Assembly: GCA_021613535.1 (NCBI GenBank)
Contig: CP075492.1
Location: 3,596,001-3,660,000, forward strand
Direction of reading: 5' to 3'
Source of the DNA: Adineta vaga
Taxonomy: Eukaryota; Animalia; Rotifera
DNA: 64,000 nt
A program made the translations under genes and the position numbers. Positions within the stretch are counted from its first letter, which is position 1. Every line of letters begins with the position of its first letter. Under the pieces are notes generated by a model. That model was given only the letters and a program-made list of their open reading frames with translations, had not been told where the DNA came from and ran no database searches. Below are positions 29,788 through 58,614 of the stretch, piece by piece.

Positions 29788-32354
29788 AATGAACTTTGAA
29801 TTTCAACCGAAAAGATTTTTGTTAAATTTAATTTGAATTAGGCGGAAGAAATGTTTTGATTTGATGAAAATGTTTGATTTAACAAAGATTTTCTTTTATT
29901 TTTTGTGTTTTCGATAATTTTGTTTCTATCAAAGTGATTTCAAAGTGTTTTCACCGAGAAATAAAATAAAATTGATTCTCGATGATTTTGAAAAATTCGA
30001 TGTAATTTCGTTGAAATTCAACGAACTTTGAGAATGAAAACGAAGAAAAAATATTGAAATAGGATGGAAAAGATATTCGAATTTTGATAAGTTCGATTTT
30101 ATTGTAAATAATGAAACGATCGAACATATTCAAGGTAATATTTCAATAATTGATCAACGAAATGAAACAACCTGTGAATCGTTTAAAAAAATGAATGAAG
30201 TTTTGGAGAAATTTGACACGGAAAAAAGAAGTGAAGATGTTTTTCATTGTTATAACAATGAAAGTTTTATCTATTTTTATGAGAAGAATTGAGATAAAGA
30301 GAATATTTTCTATTCTGTGATGTTGAACAGTGTGGAATTAGTTTCAGAATTCCTCTATGGAATCACATTCTCTTTCCTCACCCCCATTACTTATTGTATT
30401 GTTATAACAGATCAATCAGTTTGAGCGCAATCCAATCCCACTAAGAAATTAAGAGAATTAGTTGAAACTGATTTCACGATGTTCAAAATCTCGTAATAGA
30501 CTGATTGCTCTGTAATATGTTGAATTTAAAAAGTAACAAAATCAAACTAAAGATATCAGAAAAGTTTTCCCAAGAATTAAATTTTAATATTATAACTATA
30601 AAATAGTTCGAATTGATAAGTAATTAATCTTTGAGTGGTCAAGATACCAATTTCTGATCTTTTACCTTGAAATCGATATTTTCTTTTAGAATAATTTCAC
30701 CATAAAACGAGCGATAAAATCAAGAAATATTCGATGAATTTCCATTAAAATTCGAAATATTTTCAAAATTCTCGTTAAATCTTCATTTCTCTTATCAGTA
30801 CAAAATGATATTTGATTTCTGAAACATCAGTCAAATCGAATTTACACGAATACGAAAGCATCGCTTTTGCATTAAAAATCAACAAAAATATAAACTCACT
30901 TTTTAAATTCATAAAATCTTCTTTTTCTCAATATTTCCAAAGAGATATTAATGAATTTATATGTTGATAAAAGAATAAAATTTGAGATAAAAATGTTGAA
31001 TATTTATTTCTTCAATTAGAATCAACAAATATTCGATCAAATAAATCTCAAATCTTTTATAAAATGATTTTCCTAATCAATCAATGTGAAATTTAACAAA
31101 ACTCGAGTCTTTTTCAATCTCATATACAATTCTTTTCGACTATATCTTCAATTGACGAAATATAAATATTGTCCATGAGAAATCTTTAAAACAAAGATTA
31201 ACTTTCTTTTGATCTATTCAATTATTCAGATATCTCAATTGAAATTTATGGAAATGGTACCATGTCATTAATGTTGTTCAAGAAATGAAAGTAGAACTTT
31301 TGAACAACATATCGAATTTGAGTAACCGTAGAATTATTTAGTTAATGAACTAAAATTTATACAAATCGATAGATGATTATACATCTCATCTTTATTTCGT
31401 TCTATATTTAGACATTAACTTATTTGAATATGTTAAAAGAAATGAAATTTAAATTGATGAAGTACGATAAAATAAAGAAAAGACTTTTTTTGCTCTCGAA
31501 CAGCAATGTTTTCTTCGGTATAAAGACATTTAAGAAGTTACATTTTGGAGAATAATCGAATGAGGGACGATGAAAAATACTATTTGGATTGTGATTTATT
31601 AGAGAATACAGTTTTTCTATGATAATCTACAAACATTGGCTATGTATTGTGTATCAATGATTGTGAAAATTTAATTAAAATTGAAAAGGTTTTGATGATT
31701 ATAGAATATGAAATGACAAGAAGAGAATAAATATTTATTTTCATATCTTTCTATGTTGAATCGAAGTCATAGAACATATCATAATGCATAGATTCGACTA
31801 TTAGAAGATGTTCTACAATGCACTACCGTAAGATTAACTTGATATATTCTTATCGTGTTATGTTACATAAACAAATAGTAAATGTGTACATGAAATAATT
31901 TATATTAAATGTCAAAATGTATCAACGATAATTATGATATAATTGAATATAAAGTTTTTTTTAGAAAATAAATTTCTGTTGAATATCTTCAAGTCATAAA
32001 TCATTACGTGTTCGAATATAAAACTCATTTAAAAAATACCGACTGAAAAAAAAACTAATGACCACGTTGTTTATTTTTAATTAATTATTTCCTTTAATAA
32101 TAAATAGGTGAATATTCTTATGAATTCGACTCACTTCAATGATTTCCTTTCGTTTGTTATATTAAAAGAAAAACAAAATAAATTTCTTTTATTCTTTCGA
32201 AATTATCGAAAAGAAAACAATAATGTCAACATTTCTTTTCTTTCTCTCATCCCATTCATAATATATTTCATCCTTTCATTATATAAAATCACAATTTTAT
32301 TTCGATGGTATTTCCAGTCATCAATTACACATCAGTTATTGTTTATTATTGTTC

Positions 32355-32540
32355 AATACGTAATCTTGTTGTTGCAACATGTATGATAAGTGCAATAACA
32401 ATATTATATTTAGCTATCGTTGATCAATACTTTGTTACTTGTTCTCGTTCATGATGGTAACAATGATCAAATATTCGAATAACTCATCGTCTTCCAATAA
32501 TCATTTCTATTCTCTTGACTTCACATGTCATATCATCTTT
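32355..32540 (+). pseudogene. Fragment of a rhodopsin-like GPCR (TM3-ICL2 region)
   Basis: Reads ...YLAIVDQYFVTCSRS*W*Q*SNIRITHRL, a DRY-equivalent TM3 end interrupted by stops. Confidence 0.5.
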
Positions 32541-32607
32541 ATGAATATTCCCTCGACTGTAGGGAGGGTCTTGTGAAAAAAATTGTTTATTTGTAAATTT
32601 GTGTCAG

Positions 32608-32762
32608 AGTTAAAGGTCAAAGGTCAAAGACACATCAGTGAGGGCTAGTTTGAAACTATACCCCCACCCACGGTTTCACTCAACACTCATGTCCCTACTC
32701 GTCCAAGATGATGATTTCAAAATAGCCTTCACTGATGTGTTTTTGACCTTTGACCCTGAACT
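32608..32762. mobile_element. MITE-like element with about 48-bp imperfect terminal inverted repeats
   Basis: agttaaaggtcaaaggtcaaagacacatcagtgagggctagtttgaaa (32608-32655) versus the reverse complement of tttcaaaatagccttcactgatgtgtttttgacctttgaccctgaact (32715-32762). Confidence 0.75.
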
Positions 32763-32894
32763 GGGACCACATCTGAAAATATTGAAGAAGTCGAAAGCAT
32801 TATCAATGATAACCCGTATATTATAATAGAAGAACTAGAAAAACAAACTGATCTCGGACCATCTGGATCTTAGAAAAATCATCGCTCGGTATGT

Positions 32895-33314
32895 ACCCAA
32901 AAAGCAAAGACCTTCGCGTGATGTTCAAGGTATTAAACTTCATCATGATAATGGGCGGCCACATGTTCATAAGGATGTGCTGAATTACTTCGAGTCTGAA
33001 GGTATTACAATAATTCCACATCCACCTAATTCTCCTGATTTATCACCATGTGATTTTTGGTTATTGCACTTAATCAAACAGAATCTGACCGACAAGACAA
33101 CTCAGAATCGTTATGCCGTGCTATGTCCAACTTCATGAACTCTTTAGGCAAAGAAGAATATAAAAAACACTTAATAAATGGGTTCAACGCATGCATTTGT
33201 GTATAGATGACGATGACGATTATTTCGAACATCTGATAAAATAAAAACTTATTATTTAAGCCTGTTAAACGATATTAAACTGTCACTGTCCGAACTTTTG
33301 GTATGCCCTAAGTA
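32895..33314 (+). mobile_element. 3' relic of a mariner (Tc1/mariner, DD34D-type) transposon
   Basis: IKLHHDNGRPHVH...IPHPPNSPDLSPCDFWL...KWVQRMHLCI....DYFEHLIK* with frameshifts; putative right end ...ccgaacttttggtatgccctaag followed by TA (33313-33314). Confidence 0.85.
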
Positions 33315-34261
33315 TAAAGAAGATTGTTTTCGTTGCTTTTGAATAAGAGTGATCAATTTCAAAAACGGTCATAATTGTATTCTCGTACTTGAACTTCTTA
33401 TCATCACATGACACGATATTATATCATTATATAGCATTTGTTAGAACATGGCGAGCACTGCAACCTTATATGACAATATTCACCTCTAAATTGCTTTTTA
33501 TCATCATAAGAACTGAGTTTTGTTAGACTTCGAAACATTCTGTATAGCATAGAGTGTGTGAGGGTGTGAAGAGAAAGAAAAGTGAAAAGAATAAAAGAAA
33601 TAATTAAGACGAAAGATGCATTATAGCTAATGGTGATGATATTAAGTGTTATAGAGAATAGAAATAATGGAGAATTTGTGTTTTTTAGAAAAGCACGAAG
33701 TTTGCCTTGTGAATATGTTTACGACTGATTAACCACAACGTGTTGGTAGGTATTGTCGGATAATATGAGTTACTCTGAAATGAAAAAATATAAATTTATC
33801 AATTTTGTAGAGGTTTTCTGAAGCACGTCAAATGACATATAGTGACTCTTGTTTATGAGAGTACAGTTGAGTCTCACTATGTTATACGACAATTATTCCA
33901 AATAATGCTCAAATACTCTCAAAAATATCTTGTTTTTCAGAGCTCTACGGTCATTTGAGCTGAATTGTTTTTTACGGATACATAATCTCAGTTGTGTGGA
34001 GTCTTGCTTCATTAGGTTATGGCTCAGTTAAAAAGGAATTCACTAATGAAGAAAAATATGATTTTTTAAAATTGCACGAGTAAAGACATCTCAGCAAAAG
34101 TGATTCTTGCAAATAGTATCTAGTATCTGCGAAAAAATGTTAGCTCAAACCAACATCTGATATACGAAAAATGAAGGAGATTCTAGATATCTGTCTTGGC
34201 TCTTGTTTGCCATTATCACCGCTACCGAAGTACATGAGAACATTTGTATTTGCAGAACTTT

Positions 34262-37075
34262 TCATTCACTACGTCGAGCTGTGTTCCTCAATGTAAAGTA
34301 CAACTCTAACGATTCAAATATATCACATATATAGGTAAATTTCTTACCATTTCCGACTGCTGAACAGATGCATGTGTTTCCATTTCCACAAATGCCTCTA
34401 CCACGGTGACCACGATTCCGACACCATGCGTCACATGCACAACCACTACCTAGCACCGAAACAAAAGCGAGCGATGGTTTCATCAATGTTTCAGAATCGC
34501 TCGCTTCGTTTACCAATTTGTTCTTTGGTTGCCTTTTTGTCTGTGCAAATACAAGTATGTCCGTTGCCACATACTCCGAAGGGTAAGCCCCGATCACGAC
34601 ACCATTGAGCGTAGCCACAGGTTTTACCTTCCGTAAAATCTAAAGAAAATCGAATTACTTCACTGCTGAAAACTGCCGTCGCAAGATTGAGAATAAGGAA
34701 TGTATCTTACTGTTGTCAACAGATGCGGATGTTGTCGTTTCTACAAATACAGAATACATGTAATTGCTTTTAACATTAGGTGTTGAAACTGTCTCTTTCC
34801 TGCTTTCAATATACGGGTGAAATATATTGGTGTGTCACACAATTTTTAAAGTGAAATCACAACTTAGAGACATCATTCTTTCTTACTTTTATCGGTTGAT
34901 GAACACAAACATGTGTGTCCATCACCACAAACGCCTCCATCATGATGCCCACGCTTTCGACACCACGCATCACATGTACAACCGCCACCTAGAATCAAAA
35001 AAAGAAAGTGAATGTTTATTCCATGGCGCCTTCAGAACAGTTCGGTTTATTTACCAATTTGTTCTTTAGTTGCCTTTGTGTCTGTGCAAATACAAGTATG
35101 TCCGTTGCCACACACTCCGAAGGGTAAGCCCCGATCACGACACCATTGAGCGCAGCCACAGGTTTTACCTTCCGTAAAAACTAAAGAAAATCGAATTACT
35201 TCACTGCTGAAAACTGCCGTCGAAGGATTGAGAATAAGGAATGTATCTTACTGTTGTCAACAGATGCAGATGTTGTCGTTTCTACAAATACAAAATAATC
35301 ATTCTATAATAAGCTTAGAACCAGAAACAATAGCATGTTTCGTTTGAAGAGGATTTCCTTAGCTAATCTATGTATATTTCGAAGTAGTTTACTCTTTATG
35401 GCAATGCGCAAGATATGATCAAGAAATTCACAAAACTATTGAAATTTAGCTGACTTGAAATACAATATAGATATGGATAATTACAACAAAGATACTGTGT
35501 TTCTTAGTGATAAATTTCTGTATATTTCATAAATATATAATCTGATAAATGTTATAATATGGTTTCATTCTTTCATATTTTGCTCGAAAATCTTCGCAAT
35601 CTATAAGTGCTGAAAATATTATGACCTTTCTTCATCGTCGTAGTTTGTTTGGTGGTTGTAGTCAAAACCCGTGAGTTTTGATAAAGCATACGAATTTGTA
35701 TTTGATCCTAAAACAGACAAATACAACCATTGAATTCTTTTCAGATTAATAGACAGACTAAAAGAATTATGGAGTGAGGACTAGTTCTATTTCATGCTCT
35801 TTCAATTCATATGCAGTCTAAAGTCAAAGATATTGTTTAATTATATTTCAAAGTTAAATATAATGCTCTAATCGATGTCGAATTCTTACAACTTCGATAT
35901 TAAATCGTCGATTTTGATATTTGGAAAAGTCATAGGATCGATAGTATATATTCATCAAATTTGTTCTATGCGTTGAGAATAATCTTTTAAGAAATGTCTC
36001 TACAGGCAAATAGTGACTGGTTCATTGGCGAGTGCTAAAAATTTGGAAAAGTAAGGGTTTCATATGTCAAGAGATGAACGATTACACGATTTCATATACC
36101 CGTACAGACTTTACATATGAGGATAGTGTGTGAAACGAAGATGTACTTTACTTACTGGTGTCGGTAACATTTCCGATGGTTGCAACAGTTGATAAAATGG
36201 ATTCATAAGTGCCTTCGCTTCTTGATTGTTATGATTAAGTCCAAGACTGTGTCCGATTTCATGCGCGGCAACGAGACGAAAATTGATACCCACATCATCA
36301 TACCCTCAAAATCAAGTCGTGAAAAGATTAAAAACATAGTACTGTTTACTGTACTTACGCTTCTGTCCAATGTTCCTCCAGGTCCATCAAATGGAAATCC
36401 ATCTGCGTGATCACCATGCACAAAATCCAAATTGAAATCAGCTTTGGTATTTTCAGTTGCCTCACGGAAGGTTAATCCCGCGTGACTAGCCCAATCGTCA
36501 AATGCCTGTTGAATATATTTACGAGTTTTTTATTTGAGAAAGGGTCAACGATTGCCATTCAATTTCCACATAAGTGCTCGATTTTTTGGCCTTGAATAGA
36601 AAAGTTTTCTCGTAATTAAAATGAGATGACTATCGTCACTACTTCAACGCCATAGAAAGAAAAAAGAAAAGGCGTACCATAGTGCGTTTCTACTCGTAAA
36701 CGCTAGTGGATAATCGGGCAAACTGCATCGCGGCATTCTCATCAGTCTCTCTGTGGCTGCATCAAGTATCTTAGTCACTTTTAGATTAAAGTTGGTTTGA
36801 AAAGATTCAAGCATCGACGCCAAACTCGTCGAACACAATGGACCAGATCCGTTGCTTGGTTTCGAACCAGTAGGTCTGACACATGGATTATAGCCGAATT
36901 GAGTGAGATATTGGTAGACATTGATATTTGTCTTTGCAGCGAGAGTTTTCGTCTGAGAATTTCGCTGAAGTGGTTTTGCCTTCGCCTTGAACTTCGATGT
37001 AGGAAACTTAACTGGTTTGGTACTTAGGACGATGAGTATAAGAGCAGAAAGAGTAAGTAACGAAAAGAACTGCAT
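34262..37075 (-). pseudogene. Matrix metalloproteinase (signal peptide, PRCxxPD pro-domain, HExxHxxGxxH) spliced to a Thr-rich linker and four CS-alpha-beta defensin-like exons; this copy is disabled; terminal exon uncertain
   Basis: PRCSLPD, HADGFPFDGPGG, AAHEIGHSLGLNH, ALMNP; exon 35707-35626 DQIQIRMLY..TTTTKQTTT; exons 35281-35252, 35180-35055, 34988-34887, 34740-34711, 34639-34514 and 34449-34348 are all phase 1-1; in-frame stops at 36545-36547 and 36530-36532; the AHA..HFD segment is missing. Confidence 0.78.
34340..35295. repeat. Tandem duplication (541-bp period) of a three-exon unit: linker + defensin-like A + defensin-like B
   Basis: Near-identical exons and introns at 34514-34750 and 35055-35290. 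Confidence 0.9.
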
Positions 37076-38569
37076 GTTTCTTTTTAAAGCTGGCAATAAT
37101 GCGTAAAAATAGGAATTATTTATTTGTGATTTGAGCAACCTGTTATCTTTTTTCTTATTAAAGTAGAGAGAGAGAGGAAAGAATGAAAAGAGAAAGAAAC
37201 AACAACGAGGATTGAATAGAATGTCATCGATCCTATCAATTGATTAGACTATGAATGATGTACTACGGATTAATTTTCTTCTTTTCATAAGAGAAAGAAA
37301 AATATTGAATATATTTGTGTGCACCAAAGAAAACAACCTTGATTCGAACAAGTATTATGTATTAACAACGACGGGTTTTGTAATGGAAAAACGGTATTAC
37401 AATAGTATAAAAACAACTGTGTAATTATCAATAAAAAAACGAAAAGATTGACTTCAGTTGAAAATAAAACAGAACGTATAGAAGATGAATCGTGTCACAA
37501 GAGATTATGATATTTAAAGTATTTCATCACATTTAATTAAGAAATAAACTCGTCTATAGTCTTATATCAATGAGATACTGATAAGAAAATGTACACTAAT
37601 GTATCTTTTAGTTCTAGGTAGAATTCAGTAAAACTGAAAACAGTTCTAAAAGTTTTTATCAAAGTGAAGAATCTTTTCTTCACATAAATCTGTAAATAAG
37701 ACGGATTCGAATCGTTATACACATGGTATTGATATGTCAAAATATGTATTTGAATGATATTCGGTAGTTGATCTCGTAAGATCATTGACAATGTTATTTC
37801 TAAATATATTCTTCTATCATTTGTAATTGAATATCTTTCTAAAATTCGATTATAATCAAAAGGTGAATGATTTCTTTTAGAATTTATCGATATAATCAAT
37901 ACATCAAGAAAAAAGATCAAATCGTGTTCAACTCTATCCTTGTCTTCTTTCTTGCCACAGTGATCTGTCTGATCAAAATTGGTCATTCGATAAAAAGGAT
38001 GTTTTTATCTGAACATATTTTGATACAATCGAAGACTCTGTTGAAGAATATGAAATGTGCTTAGAACTATTATTAAAACATGAAAATTATCTTTATTTCG
38101 ATTTCCTTGTGAAGTTAAAATAATCGAAATAGATTGTAAATCAAAGTTGTTCATATTTATGGAATCAATGTCATTGAAATATAATCGAGTAAATTCATTC
38201 GTTTCAGATAAACTTTATGGAAAAACTTTCATCTAGACATACTTAATTGTTTTATGTCTTGTATTTATTGATTTTTGCGATGAAGATACACAATTATTAT
38301 TTGATGTACTAAGATAGAATATAGTGAAGATTATCATTTCTTCTTATGAATTTCATTTATTTTGAAAAGATATTGATAATACTCGATCTTTTATCGAATA
38401 AGATTCAAAATCACATTGCAAACCATTTGTATCATTTTATTTCGATATGAATCATTTTAACAATGAAAAGAAATTCATTATCTACTCGAATCTTCTAAAA
38501 CAAAATACAAATCAATCAAAATTTATTGAATTTATTCTATTTGATTTTTATTTAAATATTAATATTAAT

Positions 38570-55784: not shown

Positions 55785-58614
55785 ATGGATAATCTTCGTT
55801 TACGTGCTACCATATTGAATATTCACGATCGTCTTACTGCTGATGATCGAACACGTCTTCATCTTTATCTTGGTGATGATGAAGATCTTCCACGAAGAAT
55901 TCGAGATGATCCATCATTAAGTGGGACTTTACGTCTGATGGATTGTCTTTTCGATCGAGATACAATAAATAATCAAGATTTTAGTTTTCTTATCAATGCA
56001 CTCGATGGAATTCAATGTTTTGATGCTGCAAATTTGTTACGAAGTAAATTGATTCTTTTTTTTCTCGAAAAAATATTGTTTTGTCTAGGACATTTAAATC
56101 GAAATCGTAATGTTGATTTAAATAATTCGCTACAAAGTTTATCATCAATTATGCCACTCATCTGTAATCAGCCGCTTCGCCGTCTAGAAGATGAGAAAGG
56201 TAAACCATCTGTCGGATTGTGTATGTCATAAGTAAAATAAATGAATAATTTTATTTGATTTTAGCTAATGGTCTTCAGATAAACAATAATGGTACAAATA
56301 TTCAGGATACTTATGTAACTACAATGAAAAACAATAGAAATGTGGTATCATTGAAATTAAAAGGAAAGAAATTGCCGAAGAAATGCTCATTACCATTGAT
56401 TTTGTTATTGTGCATTATGATCGTAGCAGTCATACTTTTATTTGCTTGGATTTATGTGAAATTTCCCATATTTAAAAAAGAAAATAGTAAGTCTATCAAA
56501 ATAATCAAACAAATTCCAATAGAACAGGGGAAAGTGCAACTTAACTTTTCTGCCTGAATATACGAGATTGAAATAAATAATTACATTTGGGAGATGTTTT
56601 TTTTCCAACTCATCAAACTTTAGTCACTCTTAATAATAATCTCATTTTAGGGCATGGTATAATGCCAGATAATTCAAGATCTTTTCAAAATCACAGTACG
56701 ATCGCCCAGCATCACGAAATTACCCCATCTTTCGATCACATGAATGAAGTTACAAGCTATAACAATATTGCAGAACTATATTTCAAGATGAGAAACTACT
56801 CAAAAGCACTGGAAATATTAGATACTCAAAAACAACAACTTTCAGCTGATTCTCCGAAATTAATCCCCATCTACAATCGAATTGGTCTAATACACTCCTA
56901 CATGGGAGAACATTCAGCAGCTCTTGATGATTACAAAATCGTGCTGTCAATTCAACAAAAATCTCCTTTTCCTAATCATGCAGATTTAGCTACTACGTAC
57001 AACAGCATGGGTTTAATGTATTCTTACACTGGAGAATACAACAGAGCTCTCGAGAACTATAAAAAAGCATTAGATATTCAACAAAAAGATGTTTCTTCAA
57101 ATCATCCAGATTCCGCTACAACGTATAACAACATTGGTGAAGCATATTTTAAACTGGGGGAATACTCAACAGCTCTTACAAAATTCAACAAAGCGTTTGA
57201 GATTCAACAAAAAACTCGTTCTCCAAACCATTCGATTTTAGCAATTACTTACAATAATATTGGTCAGGTACAGTTCAAAATAGGAAATCATTCAACAGCT
57301 CTTCAGAGTTATACAGAAGCACTTAGTATTCAGCGACAATTTCCTTCCGTAAACAATCAAACAATAGCCATCATTCATAATAACTTCGGTACATATTATT
57401 CTGCCAGGGCACAGTATTCAAAAGCTCTTGACAAGTACCACGAGGCACTCAAAATTCAACAAAATTATCTTTCTAGCGATCATCCTGATTTAGCTGTAAT
57501 TTATAACAATATTGGTGAAGTGTACTTCAAGCGTGGAAACTTCTCAAAAGCTCGAAAAGAGTATAACAAGGCACTGAATATTCAAAAAAAGAATCCTGCA
57601 TCAAATCATCCAAATTTAGCCGTTACCTACATTCACATTGATCTAGTCGATTTAGATGAGGTAGGAGACTTAAAATCTCGTAACTACTTCGACAAGGCAA
57701 TAGAAATTCAAGAAAAACATCTTCCTTTTGGACATTCCGATTTAGCCGCTACTTACAACAATGTCGGCTCAATGTTTCTCAAGAAGGAAGATTATAAAAG
57801 AGCTCGTGAAAACTATGAAAAGGCATTACAAATTCAACAAAATTCTTTTTCTGCTGATCATATCGACTTGGCTACGACTTACAACAACTTCGGTGAATTA
57901 GATCTCAAATACGAAGAATACACAAAAGCTTTGGAAAACTTTAACAAAACATTAGGAATTCAACAAAAATCTCTTCCTCTCACTCATCCAGATTTTGCTA
58001 TAACTTACAACAATATGGGGGAAATACAGCTCAAAAAAGGAATGAATTTAACAGCACTTGCTTACTTCAACAAAGCATTAGAAATTCAACAAAAATCATT
58101 TCAGTCTAATCATCCAGCTATAGGTATTACATACAACAATATTGGTTCAGTATATTCGACGATAAAAAATTATTCAAAAGCACTTGAATACTATAACAAA
58201 GCACTTGCTATTCAAAAACAAATCCTTCGTACAAACCATCCAAGTTTAGCCACTACCTACAACAACATTGGCTTAATATATTTCGAAATGCAAAACTATT
58301 CAACATCATTTAAAACCTACACAAAGGCACTCGAAATTCAAGAAAAATCTCTTCCTCCCGATCATTCAGACTTAGCCTCTACTTTGATTAACATCGGTAA
58401 AGTGTACTTTCAGTTGGAAAAGAACGATGAAGCTCTCGAAAAGTTCAATAAAGCACTCAGCATTCAACAAAAATCTCTTCCCTCGGAACATTCCACCCTC
58501 GCTACAACTTACAACAACATTGGCTCAGTACATGAAAAGATGGGATTACCTACAAAAGCTCGCGAATTCTATGAGAAAGCGCAGAAAATTAATAGAAAAT
58601 CACTTTCCAATTGA
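55785..58614 (+). CDS. Death-effector-domain-like + single TM + about 14 TPR repeats; exons 55785-56043, 56089-56199, 56265-56486, 56651-58614
   Basis: LR.....I...LT..D...L..YL.D..PR...L.LMD.L.DRD.IN..D.S.LI.AL..I...DAA.LL (DED-like); TM LPLILLLCIMIVAVILLFAWIYV; 42-aa TPRs HP.LA.TYNNIG..Y...G.Y..AL..Y.KAL.IQ; all junctions are phase 1 and compatible. Confidence 0.82.

Follow-up and report, generated by a model that had tools for sequence, protein, structure and literature searches.

The targets of matrix metalloproteases (MMPs) are decided by their ancillary domains, of which hemopexin is the canonical one. The bactericidal activity of MMP12 was reportedly placed in its C-terminal (hemopexin) domain by Houghton et al. 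2009, and MMP7 is said by Wilson et al. 1999 to activate alpha-defensins in trans, acting on an unrelated defensin fold. The closest described system is MMP23, in which a ShK toxin domain takes the place of hemopexin (PMC5793123). Here we describe the gene I4U23_011708 of the bdelloid rotifer Adineta vaga, located on the minus strand at positions 37075-33605 of the analysed stretch of 64,000 nucleotides (hereafter the window; C3:3596001-3660000, contig CP075492.1). The host genome has 100.8 Mb, six chromosomes and about 29% GC. The gene encodes, in this order, a signal peptide, a prodomain with a Cys switch, the matrixin domain, the peptide DQIQIRMLY with a Thr-rich hinge, and a tail L-A-B-L-A-B, where L is a linker exon and A and B are two types of cysteine-rich modules. 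The public annotators' model P0040 (412 aa) has the same chain of MMP and module exons. The product of an intact copy would be a secreted matrixin of about 480 residues. The MMP-module domain architecture and the predicted subfamily of the modules are new; the function is what we infer from them.

Contigs of four public runs were aligned to window positions 32200-38100, and all evidence of expression comes from such assembled contigs, not from reads. The contigs hold only exons joined at GT..AG borders and therefore represent RNA. Joints of this kind were observed between exons 1 and 2, exons 3 and 4, exon 4 and L, L and A, A and B1, B1 and L, A and B2, and B2 and the last exon (studies P1 and P3). 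A contig of 950 nt from run X1 passes from exon 1 through exons 2, 3 and 4 into L, and a contig of run X2 repeats the stretch from exon 3 to L. Further contigs read [L]-A-B1-L (X1), A-B1-L-A (X7, a separate study), A-B2-last exon (X2) and B2-last exon (X7). The upstream partners of L are exon 4 and B1 only, its downstream partners are A exons only, and no other 5' exon joined to L or A was seen in the RNA contigs. No signal-peptide exon was found in the open reading frames or the sequence between exon 4 (35626) and L1 (35281). The RNA joints and P0040 make the MMP exons and the Cys-module exons one spliced transcription unit. This is what the preliminary description of the locus had proposed from the letters alone, when it joined the MMP exon ending in LPTP in phase 0 to the exon with DQIQIRMLY and the Thr-rich linker; that joint is present in the RNA contigs. 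The gene extends past position 34262, as B2 is spliced to 33774, adding one residue and then a stop.

The cysteine-stabilised alpha-beta (CS-alpha-beta) superfamily is defined by an array in which the CxxxC...CxC motif of the helix is accompanied by GxC in a third Cys pair (PMC5116183). Its disulfides pair C1-C4, C2-C5 and C3-C6. The profile made from the six modules of A. vaga, described below, matched 31 proteins at E<=1e-3 among 1.84 billion representatives, the best at 7e-30, and thus the modules are not a product of chance. A family alignment of 51 sequences was built from these matches. Its signature is C-x-C-x2-W-C-x8-10-G-x-C-G-[DN]-G-x2-C-x-C; the six Cys and one Gly are invariant in all 51 members, and the Trp and the second Gly are nearly so. 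The spacing C-x-C-x3-C-x9/10-GxC-x5-C-x-C, invariant in the 51 members, is present in A1, B1 and B2, and A2 is one Cys short in the window. Given the 51-sequence alignment, AlphaFold2 predicts a helix at residues 7-14 and strands at 18-21 and 27-30 (pLDDT 79.5). Foldseek places only CS-alpha-beta peptides among the top 50 matches of this model. An exhaustive structural comparison with 48,161 PDB representatives gave 27 chains with Z>=2, every one of them of this class. The structural matches include drosomycin, plectasin, eurocin, plant defensins, termicin and scorpion K+ toxins. Compared with PDB sequences, the 51-sequence profile aligns in register from CxxxC to CxC with the Anopheles defensin, sapecin, lucifensin and alpha-KTx (E 0.03-0.6); the six-sequence profile gave nothing useful there. 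Both the cysteine array of the superfamily and, in the predicted model, the helix packed on an antiparallel sheet are present. According to this model the modules have the CS-alpha-beta (cis-defensin / scorpion-toxin) fold, which is how their signature had been read at the outset.

None of the arthropod and plant defensin families of Pfam (PF01097, PF00304 and PF24552) passed its gathering threshold in the 51 members (best E 0.025-0.07, in 3-7 of them), and the window modules had no matches to the Pfam defensin families. The loop between the first two Cys, already described as unusually short, consists of one residue, compared with 4-16 in the known groups. Since no Pfam defensin threshold is reached and the N-loop has a single residue, the modules were filed as a new subfamily of the fold; on the evidence of the model, the A and B modules are a previously undescribed CS-alpha-beta subfamily.

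The protease part is that of a matrixin (MEROPS M10A). Both catalytic exons score above the PF00413 cut-off of 24 bits (Table 1), the prodomain reaches 23.3 bits against a cut-off of 23 for PG_binding_1, and the HExxHxxGxxH site, the Met-turn and a prodomain Cys switch (PRCSLPD; consensus PRCGxPD) are all present. At C1:7.826 Mb lies the closest paralogue, with 64% identity in exon 3. It is a full canonical MMP, in which the catalytic domain is followed by DRDGIRALYG, a T-rich hinge and hemopexin blades. Exon 4 is homologous to DRDGIRALYG with the T-rich hinge in this paralogue and to DRQGIQALYG in Rotaria, in agreement with the initial identification of DQIQIRMLY as the terminal helix of the MMP. 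Matrixins typically, though not always, carry a C-terminal hemopexin domain. A genome-wide scan for hemopexin (PF00045) found eight places, including the C1 paralogue and other MMP loci, and none in the window. The modules thus occupy the place that hemopexin has in the C1 paralogue, as had been suggested. Hemopexin would have been replaced, through phase-1 exon shuffling, by two tandem A-B pairs. L and A are part of a 298-nt direct repeat, 90% identical, with a spacing of 541 nt; nucleotide identity is 96% between A1 and A2 and 75% between B1 and B2.

The exons were searched one by one, and the only joined protein models used were public database proteins. The search of related genomes for intact fusions that the preliminary description had called for found them in Rotaria. 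In Rotaria sp. Silwood2, proteins P0005 and P0033 have the order MMP-A-B and an intact HEIGHALGLDH site, with all exons within 2 kb (locus L021) in one gene. In Rotaria sp. Silwood1, P0038 has the order MMP-A-B-RicinB. The Rotaria proteins contain a single A-B pair located ten residues after the catalytic domain. The MMP-A-B fusion is thereby kept in two bdelloid families. The usual structural-zinc histidines are absent from the Rotaria fusion proteins (GDDFDG, LAYAY, IRFD). In P0039 of Rotaria sp. Silwood1 the second His (HEIAY) and Cys are lost, and this is a decayed paralogue. The catalytic Glu is lost in further bdelloid relatives of this MMP, with HQIGH and HVIGH observed among P0041, P0042 and P0046 of A. 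steineri.

The module arrays of A. steineri have the orders B-L-A-B and A-B-A-B. Contig CAJNOE010000071.1 of this species (L019; 6001-7267 and 13087-13266) contains an MMP orthologue tandemly duplicated with a period of about 7 kb. Its alignment with A. vaga stops about 170 nt into intron 3, and no exon 4 or module exons were observed downstream. In contig CAJNOG010000371.1 (L020; 7860-9110) a decayed A module is followed by B-L-A-B; a pentapeptide-repeat gene lies upstream of this array, and no MMP within 8 kb upstream.

Modules of this family were also found in other architectures. Five proteins (P0004, P0017, P0019, P0021, P0106) are membrane-anchored, consisting of a transmembrane (TM) helix, a coil and A(-B). 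In P0008, which has an HExxH motif, and P0142, a signal peptide and A-B are followed by an unknown domain. P0008 comes from a JGI metatranscriptome contig (L023); in it and in P0007/P0015 (A. ricciae / ENA), A-B or B is joined to unknown domains of about 200 residues, one of them with HExxH. No Pfam family was found in the non-module parts of P0008, P0007, P0015, P0142 and P0025. In stand-alone forms (P0011, P0018, P0027, P0028, P0030) a signal peptide precedes one or two modules, after which GKR/KRR and an acidic tail often follow. Their sources are the nematode Plectus sambesii and unassigned environmental contigs.

The profile search of the A. vaga genome found six modules only, four at I4U23_011708 and two at a second locus 0.9 Mb away. 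The latter is I4U23_012031 (L016:6016-7188 = C3:4535015-4536187, plus strand), encoding P0002 of 309 aa with an N-terminal death-effector domain (DED), a TM helix, a coiled stretch and the pair A'-B', followed by a stop; the modules are entered in phase 1, as in I4U23_011708. The DED match is just under the cut-off (PF01335, E=4e-8). The A-B end of P0002 is presumably extracellular. At least 52 relatives of the DED exon, 35-76% identical, are spread over all six chromosomes, including one at window positions 55785-56039 (plus strand). They form a large family with N-terminal DEDs and apparently variable C-terminal domains.

The copy of I4U23_011708 in the window is broken. Exon 2 contains two in-frame stops, TGA at 36547-36545 and TAA at 36532-36530, and the frame is broken between 36359 and 36305, within the catalytic region; the complete catalytic domain with AHAF..HFD in an open frame is absent from the window haplotype. 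In the X1 contig, substitutions 36546 C>G and 36531 T>G turn both stops into TCA (Ser), and the A. steineri orthologue P0139 also has Ser at both positions, within SHSPFDKSKIRK. From anchor 36372 to anchor 36300 there are 84 letters in the contig and 71 in the window, an intron of about 55 nt being among the latter. This corresponds to 68 extra letters in the contig, bordered by the 7-nt repeat listed in Table 1, and simple arithmetic on the record puts exon 3, with these letters, in frame with exon 1. The deleted segment is AHAF...H.D...W, the structural Zn/Ca site, which is present in the C1 paralogue and in P0139. Exon 1 shows no differences between RNA and window over 391 nt, and the A. 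vaga genome has one copy of this MMP; the RNA is therefore derived from the other allele and not from a paralogue. The module A2 is, as first reported, a phase 1-1 duplicate of A1 with a C>Y replacement, and its coordinates and TAC codon were confirmed. The expressed A2 probably reads Cys, since contigs after L2 or before B2 fit the spelling of A1.

Given Ser at both stops, the missing letters in frame and the likely Cys in A2, the other allele looks intact, that is, open at every checkable place; 61 of the extra letters are unaligned. The window copy is a dead allele with two nonsense codons, a 68-nt frameshifting deletion and the C>Y replacement in A2. The initial statement that the protease is disabled therefore holds for the assembled haplotype and does not extend to the RNA allele. 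An alternative genetic code for the in-frame TGA and TAA was ruled out by the Ser in the RNA allele and in the orthologue and by the frameshifting deletion. A short intron-retention isoform ending in LPTPVSKVHLRFTHYPHM and a stop was suggested by its tail, identical to A. steineri P0139 in 12 of 14 positions. This tail was dismissed as evidence because DNA identity of 80-85% continues for about 170 nt past the donor, beyond the stop. Searches for the intact A. vaga allele among database proteins with P0033 and P0040 gave only the model P0040. The two alleles, one broken and the other apparently intact, provide a clear-cut case of allele-specific decay in an asexual genome.

As to the role of the tail, we consider it probable that the A-B pair stays attached to the MMP as its C-terminal targeting or binding domain, as do hemopexin and the ShK domain of MMP23. 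The order A then B holds in every rotifer-type protein with at least two modules. The A|B linker is kept as a sequence (..TK[ED]xIG) and contains no dibasic or furin site. The pair is single in Rotaria, and forms the C-terminal end of P0002 (DED-TM) and of P0004 and P0106 (TM-coil); it also occurs, between a signal peptide and an unknown domain, in P0008 and P0142. The net charge of the modules is between -2 and +3. These features together favour an attached binding di-domain. The A-B tail would take over the role of hemopexin, giving the protease its address, and would direct the enzyme to a microbial or cell-surface ligand, which seems the most likely kind in view of what CS-alpha-beta domains bind elsewhere. 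Defence is the most likely setting, given the stand-alone relatives resembling antimicrobial peptides and the signs of birth-and-death dynamics: the dead window allele, the rearranged A. steineri locus, the decayed P0039 and the relatives without the catalytic Glu. I4U23_011708 would thus belong to the fast-evolving defence gene set.

Several observations weigh against an attached tail or against the fusion and fold on which it depends. In A. steineri the fusion was not found: the 6 kb downstream of P0139 contain no module exons and the 8 kb upstream of the P0001 array no MMP, and the MMP orthologue and the B-L-A-B array are on different contigs. In the RNA, exon 4, L and A are linked by overlapping contigs, with no single contig across them, because L has 30 nt, which is k-1 of the assembler, and contigs break there; the joints from the MMP into L all come from one study. 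The individual fold matches are weak (Z<=3.1, Foldseek E>0.4), as the module has only 33 residues. P0018, P0027 and P0028 have the classic layout of a secreted antimicrobial-peptide precursor (signal peptide, one module, GKR/KRR, acidic tail), and hence the ancestral job of the fold may well be the killing of microbes. The Lys-Lys ahead of each L-A-B unit of A. vaga could be a processing site.

The preliminary description had proposed a secreted protease-antimicrobial polyprotein that either releases its own peptides or targets microbes. As a precursor, it would have A, B or A-B cut out by the MMP or by convertases as free defensin-like peptides. The predicted defensin fold of the modules, the repetition of the units in A. 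vaga and A. steineri, and the amidation or dibasic signals of the stand-alone secreted relatives are what such a precursor would have, and some peptide release could occur because Lys-Lys precedes each L-A-B unit. However, potential processing sites are limited to these Lys-Lys pairs. No dibasic or furin site is present at A|B or after B2, and none in Rotaria, where the ten-residue linker leads to just one A-B pair. Moreover, the A|B linker is conserved, the modules are nearly neutral, and A-B terminates membrane proteins that have a cytoplasmic signalling domain at the opposite end. The self-releasing polyprotein thus has weak support, and a free-peptide precursor is unlikely, less likely than the attached tail. 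A toxin-like tail that blocks or traps an ion channel or receptor, unrelated to microbes, has a precedent in MMP23 (PMC5793123), whose ShK domain acts on Kv1.x channels, and scorpion K+ channel toxins (BmKTX, agitoxin, OSK1, tamapin) make up a large share of the nearest structures. On the other hand, antifungal and antibacterial defensins are equally numerous among the matches, and ligand sensing is the better fit for a module that sits on a death-domain receptor-like protein. Pore-blocking toxins typically have a Lys-Tyr dyad. No such dyad is evident in the layout of the modules, a judgement made without a formal test, and we regard this explanation as quite improbable.

The remaining explanations concern the gene itself. 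The whole locus might be on its way out, its transcripts being functionless relics: there are four lesions in the window haplotype and a rearranged locus in A. steineri, and decay is seen in P0039 (HEIAY, lost Cys) and in the relatives without catalytic Glu (P0041, P0042). This is very unlikely, as the RNA allele is open at all lesions seen, Adineta, Rotaria and Plectus all keep the six Cys, Trp and Gly with little or no variation, and the fusion is kept in two bdelloid families. It is still harder to believe that the Cys exons are an independent downstream gene and the fusion an artefact of annotation or assembly. The lack of a single contig spanning exon 4, L and A and the A. steineri arrays lying apart from any MMP would be explained in this way. 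Nevertheless, the joint of exon 4 to L is present in two runs and that of L to A in another, L has no upstream partner in the contigs except exon 4 and B1, a signal-peptide exon that could start a second gene between 35626 and 35281 is absent, and the MMP-A-B fusion occurs in Rotaria too.

If the tail is an attached binding domain, one may tentatively go further, although we would not rate this extension as the likelier outcome: A-B may be a defensin-derived recognition module shuffled by bdelloids as a phase-1 cassette between immune effectors and receptors (the secreted MMP; DED-TM-A-B). If so, a protease would attack, and a death-fold receptor would sense, one and the same microbial ligand. 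In any case, larger proteins, a death-domain membrane protein among them, would be using the defensin fold as a building block, which offers a testable route into bdelloid innate immunity.

Table 1. Features of I4U23_011708 in the window, in the order of transcription
Feature	Position	Strand	Content and boundaries	Evidence
Exon 1	36678..37075	-	Start codon, signal peptide, PG_binding_1-like prodomain, Cys switch PRCSLPD; ends in phase 2	Open reading frame and translation; PF01471 E=7e-5; joint 36677/36589 GT..AG in RNA; contigs over 37144-36677 with 0 differences from the window
Exon 2	36359..36590	-	First half of the matrixin catalytic domain; stops TGA and TAA in the window haplotype	PF00413, 46.5 bits
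Deletion site	36372..36378	-	68-nt frameshifting loss, 7-nt microhomology	
Exon 3	36156..36305	-	Zinc site HEIGHSLGLNH, Met-turn ALMNPFY; ends in LPTP, phase 0	PF00413, 44.4 bits; joint 36155/35706 GT..AG in RNA runs X1 and X2
Exon 4	35626..35707	-	Last catalytic helix DQIQIRMLY and Thr-rich hinge; ends in phase 1	RNA joint to the 30-nt L
L1	35252..35281	-	30-nt linker exon TTTSASVDN, phase 1-1	Splice sites; present in P0040; joint of exon 4 to L seen, contig side maps to the near-identical L2
A1	35055..35180	-	Type-A predicted CS-alpha-beta module TCGCAQWCRDRGLPFGVCGNGHTCIC with conserved linker TKATKEQIG; phase 1-1	RNA joints L to A and A to B1; AlphaFold2 pLDDT 79.5, helix and two strands; fold matches
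B1	34887..34988	-	Type-B module GCTCDAWCRKRGHHDGGVCGDGHTCLC; phase 1-1	Family alignment; RNA joints A to B1 and B1 to L2 in three runs, two studies
L2	34711..34740	-	Second 30-nt linker exon, phase 1-1; differs from L1 by 1 nt	
A2	34514..34639	-	Copy of A1, second Cys replaced by Tyr (TAC 34613-34611) in the window haplotype; phase 1-1	
B2	34348..34449	-	Type-B module GCACDAWCRNRGHRGRGICGNGNTCIC; phase 1-1	Joints A to B2 and B2 to 33774 in two studies
Last exon	33605..33774	-	Completes GAG (Glu), then TAA stop 33772-33770 and 3' untranslated region	Joint 34348/33774 GT..AG in X2 and X7

Two further features were observed downstream of the gene. A short open reading frame at window positions 32977-33138 (plus strand), with the stretch PHPPNSPDLSPCDFW, is similar to the C-terminal part of a mariner/Tc1-type transposase and is likely a transposon remnant just downstream of I4U23_011708. 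A 38-nt stretch at 32546-32583 occurs inside longer RNA contigs with unrelated flanks in three runs, including one with another species label, and probably represents a short repeat or conserved element.

The literature searched contained nothing on bdelloid or rotifer defensins, on metalloproteinases with defensin-like domains, or on MMPs of Adineta, and a defensin-fold tail on an MMP is undescribed in it. The predicted subfamily with a one-residue N-loop is present in bdelloids, the nematode Plectus and environmental eukaryotes, and no described defensins of Rotifera were found. The modules resemble the invertebrate CS-alpha-beta defensins (insect defensin A, sapecin and lucifensin; plectasin; drosomycin) and the short scorpion K+ toxins in the common CxxxC...GxC...CxC pattern and in the predicted helix with a two-stranded sheet. 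The spacings from the second Cys on (3, 9-10, 5, 1) are identical to those of insect defensins. Differences from the known defensins are the invariant helical Trp, the G-[DN]-G turn and the use of the modules as domains of large proteins, arranged in fixed A-B pairs and with near-neutral charge.

With the canonical hemopexin MMPs (the nearest vertebrate matches are MMP-19; the C1 paralogue is of the same type) I4U23_011708 has in common the prodomain, the Cys switch, the HExxHxxGxxH site, the Met-turn, the terminal helix and a Thr/Pro-rich hinge. The difference is that the hemopexin blades are absent and L-A-B exons are present instead. MMP12 and MMP7 provide a conceptual link between MMPs and antimicrobial activity. 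However, this activity is in hemopexin itself (MMP12) or is exerted in trans (MMP7), unlike the situation with fused modules. The parallel with MMP7 and alpha-defensins, drawn at the outset, stands only as an analogy, since alpha-defensins have a different fold.

The closest likeness is to MMP23 and to the astacins bearing ShKT domains, which, like I4U23_011708, are secreted or anchored metzincins with a small disulfide-rich C-terminal domain of the toxin type in the position of hemopexin. Rangaraju et al. 2010 and Galea et al. 2014 are said to have described the mechanism behind the binding specificity of the attached toxin domain of MMP23. The likeness is functional only: the domain of MMP23 is the all-helical ShKT with six Cys, whereas the predicted fold of the modules matches CS-alpha-beta and not ShKT. 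An Ig-like domain and a type II membrane topology characterise MMP23, whereas I4U23_011708 has a signal peptide, a Cys switch, a Thr-rich hinge and two A-B pairs. It would be the second natural case, after MMP23, of hemopexin being replaced by a mini-domain of the toxin type.

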